NCBI RefSeq assembly: GCF_016433145.1
Contig: NC_058130.1
Span: 167,035,972 to 167,099,971 of the forward strand
Reading direction: 5' to 3'
From: Gracilinanus agilis
Taxonomy: Eukaryota
Length of the DNA stretch: 64,000 bases
The notes beneath the pieces were generated by a model. That model saw only the letters and a program-made list of their open reading frames with translations, did not search any database and had not been told where the DNA came from. Position 1 is the stretch's first letter. Each line of letters starts with the position of its first letter. The translations under genes were made by a program, and so were the position numbers. This document shows, piece after piece, positions 29,920-42,700 of this stretch.

Positions 29920-30031
29920 GGAATAAACATTTATTAAGTTCTTGCTATGTGCCAGGCACTGTGCTAAGCATTTTTACAAATATTAGCTCATTTGATCCTT
30001 TCAACAACTTTGGGATGTAGTTGCTGTTTTT
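29920..30031 (-). mobile_element. MIR/MAR1-type SINE, left half (split by the ORMDL1 retrocopy)
   Basis: TGTGCCAGGCACTGTGCTAAGC...ATTAGCTCATTTGATCCT...CAACAACTTTGGGATGTAGTTGCTG continues seamlessly into 32040-32190. Confidence 0.85.
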
Positions 30032-32034
30032 TTTTTTCCATTTAAAAAATCTATTTATTAAAATAACACATCCATTCATATTAGTGTTTCAAAATGTGGG
30101 AAAAAGATAAAAACATACAAAGTTAATTTTACAACTGATTTTGATACTTAAGACTATCAATGCAAACAATAATCTCCCCAAGATGTTGAAGACAGTTCAG
30201 CTTTATTAGGATGAAGTGATTTTTAAGTAGTCTTTGAAGCTACTTAATTTTAGTTTATTTTCCAAAAATTACTGAATTTTGGAATGTTTAATTTTTTCAA
30301 TAATTTATTTTCTGATGTTTGTAATAGCTAATTATCATCAACAACAAATTTTGAGGAAATCTTAACAGGGAATTATGTGTATCAATTAGGACTGGGAGAA
30401 ACTGACTTAAAATGACAACTTTTAAGTTCACTTCCTTTGACCATTTAAATTGATACCTATTTTGAATGTAAAGTTAATAGATAAGGTATGGATAAAGAAG
30501 AGGGAAAGTATCCTTTAATGCAAAACTACAAAAAAAAAACCCCAGTGTTTAGTAGCTTACTTTGTACCATGGCTGGAGAAAGTTATTTTTTTACTAGACA
30601 ACTATTTTCTTATATAACTGTCTATCTAGCATTTAACTATCCTTCCCCAGATAAAAGATTTCAACCATTAAATGGTTCAACTAGAAAATCAGAGAATTAC
30701 ACATTATATTTCAGACTGCTTGGATTCAAATTAGTTTTTTCAATTAGCAGCCTTTTAAAAAAACAAAAATAAAAAAAAAAACAACAAAAAACCAGCAGAA
30801 CTTTGATTTGTTCAAAATTAATGGCTGAAGACTCACTAGAAAGCTGCAGGAAGCCATACTGAAAACTATTAATGAGGCTTGGAAGTACATCGCCAGGACA
30901 CACCAGTCCTCTGATACCTCCAGAACTAACCAGGTCTAGATATAAAACAGTAAGCCAGTGAAAACAAAGAATACATTTGTAAAACAAAAAAGAGCTGGCT
31001 GTCTTAGGAATAGGACATTTGACCTTTTAAAAGGATGATTCTGGTCCATATATAAATGTACTTCAACTTGACTATTACTGATTGGATAATTCTTTCTACA
31101 AAGTGCCCTTTCATTATAAACTAAAGCTACTCTTAACCTCAAGACTCCTATGTCATGCAGAGCTATTTTGCTCTCACCATACTGTCAATCATTTTGTAAG
31201 CCAGGCCTGCCTGGCTCTCCTGGAAAACTTCTGCAGAAATTAAGCAGACTTGTTAAATACTTAAGAGACATCTTCTCATAAAAATCTGCTTTTCTAAATA
31301 GCATACAAATAAGTATTAGGCCTTGAATGTAAAAACTTCCCATTGCACATTACAATGTAAACGGCATAGCATGCTACCTATTCCTTCCTTATAGAAAAAG
31401 CAGTAGCCACAAAATTTTGGTCAGAATTTCAGTTTCACATTTTCAGTTTAGTACTTATTAATACCAAAGATCTGAACACCGTGCAGTTGTGGCATTTTGG
31501 GAATTAGCACACTTAGAAGAGAAGCTGTGTTTAAGATGAAGTGGGTGGGATCATACTTGGTGTAGAAACTTGCCAGAAAATATAGAATTATTGGAGAAAT
31601 TGTGAAGAACTTCCGTGAAGAAGTAAACTGTACTCCATAGTCCAACTGTTCCCAGTGAGTCAGCAGCCTGGCTTTACCCTGGTCAGGGGTTTCAAAGGGT
31701 GTTCCTTTAACTGCATGTAAAAATACATACATTCCCAGATTATGTATTATATTTGTTAATGTCCAAGCAACAGAAACACTGAAGAAGGGAATGCTGAGCA
31801 AGACGATATGAAGTAAACCAACTCCCAATGCATATGTCAGCCACATACCACGACTGTTCATTACCCGAGTATTTGGATTTACCTCACTATGAGCAACTCC
31901 AACATTCATTTTTGCTCTCAAAAGGGGTACAGAGCAAGGGAAGCAGGCAGTACGCGGCAGTGGCCGTGTCCCGGCTAAGTACCCCAGCTCCGGCCAGATG
32001 CCGGCTGGCCCCAGGGAGCCAGAGCTCAACTCTG
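30032..32034 (-). pseudogene. ORMDL1: Processed full-length ORMDL1 retrocopy (5' UTR + CDS + 1.4-kb 3' UTR + poly(A)), ORF intact
   Basis: Intronless; AATAAA at 30054-30059 (minus), A-tail at ~30027-30037, identical 13-bp TSD AGTTGCTGTTTTT at 30019-30031 and 32035-32047. The locus is not syntenic with parental ORMDL1. Confidence 0.93.
31448..31909 (-). CDS. ORMDL1: ORM1-like protein 1 ORF of the retrocopy, 153 aa, uninterrupted
   Basis: [31 protein letters not shown]...[16 protein letters not shown] matches human ORMDL1 as I recall it, except P46S and R146Q. Expression is unknown. Confidence 0.75.
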
Positions 32035-32190
32035 AGTTGCTGTTTTTATCTCCATTTTCCAGTCGAGGAAACTGAGGCAAACAGATGTTTAGTGAGTTGC
32101 CCAAGGTCACCCAGCAAGTAAGTGTCTGAGACCAGAGTTGACCTTAAATCTTCCTGAGTCCAGGCTCAGTGCTCTATCCACTGAGCCTAC
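32035..32190 (-). mobile_element. MIR/MAR1-type SINE, right half
   Basis: TTTTTATCTCCATTTTCCAGTCGAGGAAACTGAGGCAAACAG...GCTCTATCCACTGAGCC is the MIR core in reverse. Confidence 0.85.
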
Positions 32191-32259
32191 CTACTGCCAT
32201 TGAATGTCTTATGAATGTTTGTTGACAAAAATGGAAGTGTTAAAAATAAGTGAAGGAAG

Positions 32260-34750: not shown

Positions 34751-35296
34751 ATAAATAAGTAAATTGATGCCTGCTTTCAGCGAGACAGACCCAGATACAG
34801 AGGGTCTCCCACATACACAAGCTCTCCACAGACATGGTGAGATATGTGTACATATTGAGACAAATACCCAGAGAATCCTCGGAGCCACAAATGAGGCTCC
34901 CTGGCCAGCCTCTGTTCCTCCTAGCCCTCACACACAGTTGGATCAAACAAGTGCTGAGAGCAGACCCCACCCCCTCAATTTCCCACTCTACCACTTCCAG
35001 ACCCTGGGGCTTGGGAAACTAAAAGATTCCTGGGAGCTTTCCCCGCTAGGGACCTCCTTCTCCTTTGGCTCCTTTTAGGCCCCATCAATTGAGAAAATAA
35101 TCAGGTCAGGCAGGCAGTTTTGGTACCAGGAAGGAGAATGCCCTGTGCATGCCAGTGCCTTGCACCCAGAGCCCAGCCTAGAACGCTGATAAGCTTGGCC
35201 TGAGCACACACCTGCTTTGCCAACCCCCTTTACATATGGGGCAGTGGGCCAGGCCAGGAAGACTTTGGTTCCATCACTATAAAAGGGCTCTCTCTG

Positions 35297-35361
35297 TGAG
35301 TCACCCTGCTTCTCTGCTTCTCTGCCCCTCCCCACACAGCTTTGGCTCTGCTAGCACGTAC
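35297..35361 (+). promoter_or_regulatory. CA9 proximal promoter: AP-1 site TGAGTCA (35297-35303), SP1/C-rich box (~35322-35335), hypoxia response element GCACGTAC (35354-35361)
   Basis: TACGTG on the minus strand 50 nt upstream of the ATG; same order as the characterised human CA9 PR2-PR1-HRE promoter. Confidence 0.85.
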
Positions 35362-35411: not shown

Positions 35412-35868
35412 ATGGCTCCCCCTTGCCCAGGCCGGCTTCCCCTCCTGTCCCCAGCCAGGGCCCCCATCTGTCTGCTCTTGCTCCTCCTGCTTCTGGTCCC
35501 CTCCCGCCCCTTCAGTGTGGTGAGAAGAGAGAGAGATTCCTCTGAGGAGGAGGGAGATCCCCCTGAAACAGAGGATGGACCCCAAGAGGAGAAGCCACCT
35601 GGAGACGAGCAGCTTTCCAGGGAGAGAGAAACACCTGGCCAGGGAGATCCATCCAGGGAAGAGGATCCACTCAGGGAGGAGGTCCCACCCAGAGAAGAGG
35701 ATCCACCCAGAGAGGAGGATCCACCCATTGTCCAGGATTCTCCTGTCCCTGAAGATTCTGGTTCCCACAGAAATGTCCCAGAAAAGAAAGGTTAGTTTTC
35801 CTTTGCCTCTTTCTGCCCCATGACCACCCCCTTGCCTCATCCCCCTCCCTCAGAGGTGGGAGGGAGAA

Positions 35869-39738: not shown

Positions 39739-42700
39739 CGAATCTATCCTTATCTTGATGACTTGCTCAGCATTTGTTGTGGACAAGACCTGTGATTTGA
39801 TTGGCACTGGGAACTCCCTTTTCTGAGGCAGCCGAGTGACTTGAGGGCACTGAGAGATTAAATGATTTGCCTGGACATACAGCACAGCCAGTATATGCCA
39901 GAGGTAGCATCCAGGGTCTTTCTGACTATAACATCAGCTTTCTACAAATACTGTCTTTATCCTTCTCTTCGCCATCATTGAGAAAGCCCAATGGTGCCAG
40001 GCTTGGATGCCTTGAGGGCCTGATGAGATACAGATAGGGTGATGGCTCATGCTTTACTTGGGGAACTGGGAGATCCAGAGCAGCATCACCCCTGCTCTGA
40101 AGTCTGGTTGGATGTGGTTTTTAAATGATTTTTCTCTGATACCAGCTTCCATTACTGGCCCTCACCCCACTGCTAACTTGTTTCTATTTAGAAGTAATCA
40201 GATAACCAAGTTTGTTAGGATTATGTATAAAATAATAAATAGACTCGGTCAGAAAGATGGGAGGAAAAGGGGAGGCTCTTCAGTGCATGAGCTTTATTGC
40301 CTGACACTTGAAATTTGATTTCTGAGAGGGTTGTGTGTGTGTGTGTGTGTGTGTTTAAATGCTAAAGTGGATCCAGAGTAAAGAAATGATCAGACCTGGG
40401 TGAGGTTAATCAAGAAATAATTGGGGGGGGGGGGAGGGGGAGCAGCTGGGTGGCTCAGTGGATGGAGAGCCAGACTTAGAGAAGGGAGGTCCTAAGTTCA
40501 AATATGACCTCAGTCACTTCCTAGCTGTATGTCCCTGGGCAAGTCACTTGACCCCCATTGCCTAGCCCTTACCATTCTTTTGCCTTAGAACCAGTACACA
40601 GTACTGNNNNNNNNNNNNNNNNNNNNNNNNNNNNNNNNNNNNNNNNNNNNNNNNNNNNNNNNNNNNNNNNNNNNNNNNNNNNNNNNNNNNNNNNNNNNNN
40701 NNNNNNNNNNNNNNNNNNNNNNNNNNNNNNNNNNNNNNNNNNNNNNNNNNNNNNNNNNNNNNNNNNNNNNNNNNNNNNNNNNNNNNNNNNNNNNNNNNNN
40801 NNNNNNNNNNNNNNNNNNNNNNNNNNNNNNNNNNNNNNNNNNNTGGAATAGAGTGCTGGACTTGGATTGTAGAGAGATCTGAGTTCAAATTTTACCTCTG
40901 TCACTATTTGTGGGATCATGGGCAAGTAAGTTAAATTCTCTGAGCTTCAGTTTTCCCTGTTGTAAAATGGGAATAGCATTCTCCATAGTAGCTCATTTGT
41001 GAGAATCAAATTAAATCATGTTTGGAAAGCATTCTGCAAACCTTAAAGCACTAAATTAGTATTATTTTACTTAGAAGGGCATTGTTCTATGTAGGACGAG
41101 ATTCTGAGGTTATGGGGCACTCAGAGAGACTCAAGTAAGACCCAAGAAAATGGAGGTAGGGCCAGACAGCCTGTGATAACCTCCTGTGGGTGACTGTTCC
41201 CTTCTGTTGGCCAGACTCAGAGACTTGGGTCCCGGGACTAGATGTGTCTGCCCTCCTGCCTCACAACCTCCAACGATATTTCCGCTATAAAGGATCTCTG
41301 ACGACCCCGCCCTGCTCCCAAGGGGTCATTTGGACGGTGTTCAACCAGACGGTGCTGCTGAGTGCGGGGCAGGTGGGTCTGGAGGGGAGTTCTGAGCGGT
41401 AGAGCTGGGGGGTCAGAAGGGCGTTCCTTCTGGTGCTCTTAAAGAGAGGATCCAAATAGGACCGACCCTTATCTCGAAGACTCGCTCGGCGTTTCTGTAG
41501 CTCCTCGGTAGTACCTCAGGCGTGAGGGGGAGGGGAGGGGCAGGGGGAGATGGAGGGGAAGGGGGAGGGGAAGGGGGAGAGGAAGAAGGGCAGTCACGTG
41601 CCGTGCTGAGGAGAGAAAGCCGAGGGAACGAGTCTCCGGAGGTGAGGGCTGGGGCTGGTGGTCGAGAGGGAGTCTTCTCCTGTCCCCTCGGTCCCGACGT
41701 TTAAGACCTTTTCTGTGACCCACCCTATGACCTGGGACCCTTGACCAAATCTTTCTTCCCTGCGCCTATCGCCGCCAGCTCCGGACCCTGTCCACATCCC
41801 TCTGGGGCCCCGAGGGCTCCCGGCTCCAGCGGAACTTCAGGGCCACCCAGCCTCTGAATGGGCGAATGATCGAGGCTTCCTTCTCTCCTTCTCCCACCGC
41901 CAACAACCCGCCCTCATCCCCGGAGCCAGGTACTGCCCCATTCCCTGCCTCGGTGCGTTCCTGTGGCCCAGGATCTTGGCTTCAGGCTCTGACTTTGCCA
42001 TTTCTCCCTTTTCAGTGCATTCGAGCTCCTGCCTGAGTGTTGGTAAGTTTCTGACAGAAAACAACAACAACAAAAAAAACGCTATTTCCCTCTACTTCCC
42101 TTCTGTCATCTTTTACCTAATTAGGAATCCCCCCCCCCCCAATTTATCCAGCCCCCATCCAATGGCCTCTATTTTTTTTTTTAACCCTTACCTTCAGTCT
42201 TGGAGTCAATACTGGGTATTGGCTTCAAGGCAGAAGAGGGGTAAGGGCTAGGCAATGGAGGTTAAGTGACTTGCCCAGGGTCACACAGCTGGGAAGTGTC
42301 TGAGGTCAGACTTGAACCTAGGACCTCCCATCTCTAGGCCTGGCTTTCAATCCACTGAGCTACCCTGCTGCCGCCCCCCACCCCCACCCCCCATGGCCTC
42401 TAGAGCACTGACACTTCCTAAGGATTTTTTTTTTTCTACTGGGTTTGGGTGGTGTGGGATGAAAGAAGGGACTTTTTTTAAATAAAAGGGGAAAAGTTGG
42501 AAGTTTCCCAAATCTCATGGGAAAGGCTAGGATGTCCTTGGAGCCTTTGATGTCACTTTTGAACTTTGAGATCTATGCTGAATATAGTGCCTTGCACACT
42601 TTAAAAACGTTTTCATTTTTAAATTTTTTATATTTTATTTCTATTTATGTATGTATCATATATTTATACTTATTTGTATTTATATTTTAATAAATGTTTG

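Follow-up and report, generated by a model that had tools for sequence, protein, structure and literature searches.

Results

The insert and its target site

The window analysed here, a stretch of 64,000 nucleotides of the genome of the agile gracile opossum, Gracilinanus agilis, contains an insert of 2,003 nt (30032-32034, minus strand) that is shaped like an ORMDL1 mRNA and lies between identical 13-bp duplications. The insert interrupts a SINE and points away from a neighbouring gene that can reasonably be called CA9-like from its sequence. The features of the locus, in window coordinates, are as follows.

29920..30018, no strand assigned: left half of a split SINE, presumably MIR-type; the rebuilt empty site is spanned by alignments to other copies in the window
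30019..30031, minus strand: 3' target-site duplication, one of an identical 13-mer pair
30032..30037, minus strand: remnant poly(A) tail of 6 A, directly abutting the A-rich duplication
30038..31447, minus strand: 3' UTR of 1,410 nt, with AATAAA at 30054-30059
31448..31909, minus strand: intact 462-nt ORF, 153 aa and stop, ORMDL1 protein with R146Q (codon CAG)
31910..32034, minus strand: GC-rich leader (5' UTR) of 125 nt of the retrocopied ORMDL1 mRNA
32035..32047, minus strand: 5' target-site duplication (sense AAAAACAGCAACT), the other member of the 13-mer pair
32048..32215, no strand assigned: right half of the same split SINE, on the same alignments
35412..35795, plus strand: first coding exon of the CA9-like gene, with signal peptide and acidic repeats; context, outside the element

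The initial annotation had described an intronless mRNA copy of about 2.0 kb with an intact 462-nt ORF, a leader of about 125 nt, a 1.4-kb 3' UTR and an AATAAA signal, and each of these elements is present in order on the minus strand. The ORF translates uninterrupted to 153 aa, and the product matches the Pfam ORMDL family PF04061 with E = 6.3e-53 over profile positions 1-134 of 135. The leader is 63% GC with 6 CpG (obs/exp 0.48), has an A at -3 of the start codon and contains no upstream ATG within its 125 nt. The 3' UTR is AT-rich and its AATAAA lies 22 nt before the A-run and 28 nt from the end of the insert. An A-tail had also been described and is indeed there, but it is short: only 6 A lie beyond the duplication, or 11 when the duplication's own As are included. 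No repeats common to the insert and the rest of the 64-kb window were found, indicating that nothing has inserted into the retrocopy since its arrival.

The last ~34 nt of the leader (31910-31950 region, minus strand) are pyrimidine-rich and end in AG just before AGCAAAAATG, so that the end of the leader resembles a 3' splice site. The leader may thus derive from parental sequence that adjoins the ATG exon, either through an intronic or proximal start or by retention, instead of being a spliced first exon.

A direct-repeat scan identified the 13-mer AGTTGCTGTTTTT at both 30019-30031 and 32035-32047, with 13/13 positions identical. The chance expectation for such 13-mer pairs anywhere in 2.3 kb is ~0.04, and this pair is placed exactly at both ends of the mRNA-shaped insert, in agreement with the perfect target-site duplications claimed initially. 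In sense orientation the insertion target reads GGAGAT/AAAAACAGCAACT, i.e. AT/AAAAAC, as had been reported. The endonuclease of L1 prefers TT/AAAA, and by its letters the AT/AAAAA target of the ORMDL1 retrocopy is close to such a site.

The empty site was rebuilt from the two flanks and one copy of the duplication, giving 315 nt, and aligned to repeats in the window. Two of these repeats align across the rebuilt junction, one at 60670-60483 (70% over 196 nt) and one at 27878-27665 (65% over 234 nt), and a third SINE copy in the window begins at the duplicated stretch. Given that copies elsewhere in the window run across the junction, the empty site is one continuous SINE, presumably MIR-type by its core; the earlier statement that the insertion had split such an element and that its removal restores continuity is thereby borne out.

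The parental gene

The parental ORMDL1 protein (P0123, 'ORM1-like protein 1') is identical in Monodelphis domestica (XP_007494568.1) and Gracilinanus agilis (XP_044522386.1). The protein of the retrocopy shares 152/153 residues with it, R146Q being the single difference. In G. agilis the parental protein is encoded on a scaffold of 683,521,856 bp and the retrocopy lies on one of 801,374,265 bp, sizes that correspond to the scaffold N50 (683.52 Mb) and the longest scaffold (801.37 Mb) of the published assembly (PMC8390783). The retrocopy and its parent are on different chromosomes.

Evidence that the retrocopy lacks the parental introns is indirect and comes from the points at which annotated isoforms diverge. 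Three annotated opossum isoforms (P0130, P0001, P0132) have differing N-terminal leaders that join a common sequence just upstream of RAK-M, and the retrocopy bears a fourth leader that extends up to the same point. Similarly, sloth ORMDL1 isoforms part ways after residue 109, and the retrocopy is continuous across 109/110. Two putative splice junctions therefore appear to be crossed uninterrupted.

The R146Q substitution

ORMDL proteins regulate serine palmitoyltransferase as subunits of the complex and have a role in ceramide sensing (PMC10261145), and mammals have three ORMDL genes (PMC8167824). The parental protein matches the ORMDL3 of solved serine palmitoyltransferase complexes with E = 6e-89. 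Where the family has a conserved C-terminal VRIFGIN motif the retrocopy reads VQIFGIN, a loss that bears on function and not on descent. Residue 146 is arginine in 128/129 other ORMDL1/2/3 sequences recovered; the plant ORM in PDB 7yjk has arginine here too (VRIFGIN). The sole other Q146 belongs to a slow-loris 'ORM1-like protein 1' (P0034, Nycticebus coucang), which has 16 differences from the retrocopy.

The change is most simply derived from CGG to CAG, which would be a CpG transition, a type of mutation that outpaces all others in methylated DNA. Purifying selection for the canonical function would be expected to eliminate a change of this kind, although as a single change it is anecdotal. 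No mention of R146 of ORMDL3 was found in the literature, nor was a structure or an assay of a Q146 variant. If translated, the protein of the retrocopy would be expected to dock on the same complex (PMC10261145) and to compete for the same site with Q146 in place.

P0034 (153 aa) and a second sequence, P0031 from Callithrix jacchus (166 aa), are annotated as ORMDL1-like and carry ~15 substitutions against an otherwise near-invariant ORMDL1. Both are, from their sequences, probably old and decaying retrocopies that have been listed as proteins, and the presence of R146Q in both P0034 and the G. agilis copy suggests that this codon has been struck more than once by CpG mutation.

The CA9-like neighbour

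The initial annotation had placed CA9 head-to-head with the retrocopy and close by, and there is indeed a carbonic-anhydrase gene in this orientation, its ATG (35412) lying 3,378 nt from the 5' end of the insert. The first exon encodes tandem acidic REEDP(P/L) repeats that are proteoglycan-like; this repeat region has no Pfam match. Further along, successive parts of the eukaryotic carbonic anhydrase domain are recognised in ORFs at 37.9, 38.2 and 41.2 kb. An HRE-like TACGTG is found at 35354-35359 (minus strand), ~55 nt before the ATG, which is in keeping with CA9 biology, and a TATAAAAG box stands at about 35279-35286, just upstream of the ATG. Within the first intron, between 35800 and 36700, there is a strongly purine-rich GA/GAGA low-complexity tract with a GC skew of up to 0.69 and an AT skew of 0.56, and an assembly gap or masked run occurs at about 40600-40850, inside the gene (484 N in the window). 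On the far side of the retrocopy, a by-eye look at 18-30 kb found no obvious coding exons into which the copy might read.

A possible link between the retrocopy and hypoxia had also been suggested and finds no support here. In their catalogue of mammalian retrocopies, Carelli et al. (2016, PMC4772013) counted a bidirectional promoter as shared where a head-to-head neighbour lay no more than 2 kb away; the orientation here is the right one, but the distance of 3.4 kb to the CA9 start is beyond that limit. The HRE core RCGTG occurs 38 times in the window against 25.7 +/- 5.5 expected, a count reached by 3/100 shuffles, and the occurrence closest to the retrocopy is 1.1 kb upstream of it; near the copy these 5-mers are no commoner than chance. 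With a motif that is barely above chance in the window, the HRE-core scan was rejected as evidence for hypoxic control of the retrocopy, and any hypoxia link is speculation.

Public records

The exact 153-aa protein of the retrocopy is present in NCBI, UniRef and nr, presumably as an automatic gene model, and public annotation treats the retrocopy as coding. No Monodelphis protein of this kind occurs in the same 90% cluster. Neither the retrocopy protein nor the parental protein has a Logan source; given that the parent is broadly expressed, this absence is uninformative on expression of the retrocopy. A search of the literature for ORMDL1 paired with retrocopy, retrogene or pseudogene found no paper, apart from one match to the name 'ORMDL1P'. 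The locus is new to the literature found and its protein is already in public databases.

Youth and selection

Neutral evolution was simulated on the coding sequence of the retrocopy with a transition bias of 3, a CpG rate of 10x and indels at 12% of substitutions. At each neutral divergence (d), the ORF stayed intact and gained no more than one amino-acid change with a probability of:

d = 0.2%: 0.77
d = 0.5%: 0.37
d = 1%: 0.08
d = 2%: 0.005

Since neutrality alone predicts an intact ORF with no more than one change at divergences below ~1%, the intactness of the ORF is no evidence of selection. Under this model the retrocopy is either very young (d <= ~1%) or constrained. Perfect duplications, an unbroken A-run and a retrocopy free of nested insertions are all in keeping with youth, yet these are weak clocks: the probability that the 13-bp duplications are still identical is 0.27 even at d = 5%. 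It is from the protein and the duplications only that we infer the retrocopy to be young. The short A-tail (6 A) and the leader CpG obs/exp of 0.48 could indicate more age than assumed, provided that the leader of the parent forms a full CpG island. Were the retrocopy older than assumed, a protein altered at just one of 153 residues would be a sign of purifying selection.

Discussion

Taken as a whole, the locus is most likely an ordinary, young processed retrocopy of ORMDL1 of the L1 type that is intact by youth, a reading that we consider probable. The insert has the mRNA-shaped anatomy of an L1 retrocopy, with its poly(A) signal and (short) A-tail, it is flanked by the 13-bp duplication and leaves a continuous empty site when removed, its endonuclease-type target is TT/AAAA-like, and the parental protein is encoded on another scaffold. 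We suggest that the copy arose by LINE-1 target-primed reverse transcription from a G. agilis ORMDL1 mRNA that had been spliced and polyadenylated. It would have been inserted at an AT/AAAAA site within an old SINE, presumably a MIR, that lies in the spacer on the upstream side of CA9. The insertion would have been recent, with a neutral divergence of roughly <= 1%, and the ORF would still be open merely because too little time has passed, R146Q being the first step of neutral decay. The retrocopy presumably has no promoter of its own beyond whatever the 125-nt leader may carry, so that it would probably contribute little or no ORMDL protein.

The ORF is intact over all 153 aa, with an A at -3 and a leader free of upstream ATGs; the UTRs are complete, a poly(A) signal is present, and only 1/153 residues is changed. 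These features would suit a working retrogene: a possible fourth Gracilinanus ORMDL, driven by a proto-promoter in its leader or flank, kept by purifying selection and adding to or tuning the inhibition of serine palmitoyltransferase. The presence of its protein in the public databases is in line with such a gene, and many families of intact retrocopies have been selectively preserved in other mammals (PMC4772013). However, a retrogene is unlikely. Youth fully explains the intact ORF in the neutral simulation, and the sole change removes, via a CpG-type mutation, an arginine that is conserved from plants to mammals. Furthermore, no promoter was seen, the 90% cluster holds no Monodelphis counterpart, and it is well established that young retrocopies are mostly not preserved (PMC4772013). 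The initial annotation had offered a retrogene and a pseudogene intact by youth side by side; of these, intactness by youth is upheld at divergences below ~1%, while the retrogene gains nothing, given a substitution at so conserved a residue. That the copy is specific to its lineage, as also proposed there, is likely. A stronger version of the retrogene reading would give the semelparous G. agilis a fourth, expressed ORMDL gene whose R146Q alters the regulation of serine palmitoyltransferase and brings about a lineage-specific change in sphingolipid homeostasis; it is very improbable.

The copy might also act, if at all, as RNA only. Read from upstream-antisense transcription of CA9 or from a neighbouring unit, it might pair with the parental mRNA as an antisense or serve as its decoy, and could then be hypoxia-linked. 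The divergent orientation to the CA9-like gene and the TACGTG near its start would suit this scenario, as would a near-identical 3' UTR, presumably with the parent's microRNA sites. Against it stand a CA9 start that is 3.4 kb away, more than the 2 kb allowed for shared bidirectional promoters (PMC4772013), and the scarcely elevated frequency of HRE-core 5-mers in the window, and it is very improbable. Finally, contigs of the G. agilis assembly are short (N50 56.9 kb) and 8% of it is gaps (PMC8390783), and it might be argued that cDNA or reads from the parental mRNA were mis-joined into the scaffold. A mis-join makes neither a duplication nor a restored SINE, whereas the insert lies within one SINE, is bounded by an exact 13-bp duplication at an endonuclease-type target and gives back the SINE on removal. 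An assembly artefact or cDNA contamination is therefore rejected, and we consider it to have hardly any likelihood.

As an ordinary young retrocopy, the insert is a clean didelphid case of a gene retroposed by LINE-1, and would imply that the L1 machinery was recently active in the lineage. As it stands it matters little, the event being of an ordinary kind. Expression and selection of the copy, of which there is no sign here, would make it a natural experiment, in dosage or in sequence variant, on a regulator of sphingolipid synthesis that is sensitive to dosage. Its database record illustrates how automatic annotation lists as proteins retrocopies that are, like this one appears to be, very young.

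Comparison with known systems

The retrocopy has, like its ORMDL1 parent, a full ORMDL domain; it differs from the parent in having neither the introns nor the parental promoter, in the R146Q change within the C-terminal VRIFGIN motif and in its location on another scaffold. Over its whole length the predicted protein belongs to the same family as the ORMDL3/ORM subunits of solved complexes (6m4n, 7k0m and 7yj2; 7yjk from plant; 8c80 and 8iaj from yeast). P0034 and P0031 resemble it in that all are ORMDL1-derived ORFs of approximately full length that are listed as proteins; these two, however, appear much older than the G. agilis copy. Compared with the L1-mediated processed retrocopies of mammals (Carelli et al. 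2016, PMC4772013), there is no difference in kind: the G. agilis copy is likewise intron-less, with UTRs, a poly(A) signal, an A-run and a 13-bp duplication, and is on a different chromosome from its parent. It stands apart from them only in its A-tail, whose shortness is unusual given how young the copy looks in other respects.
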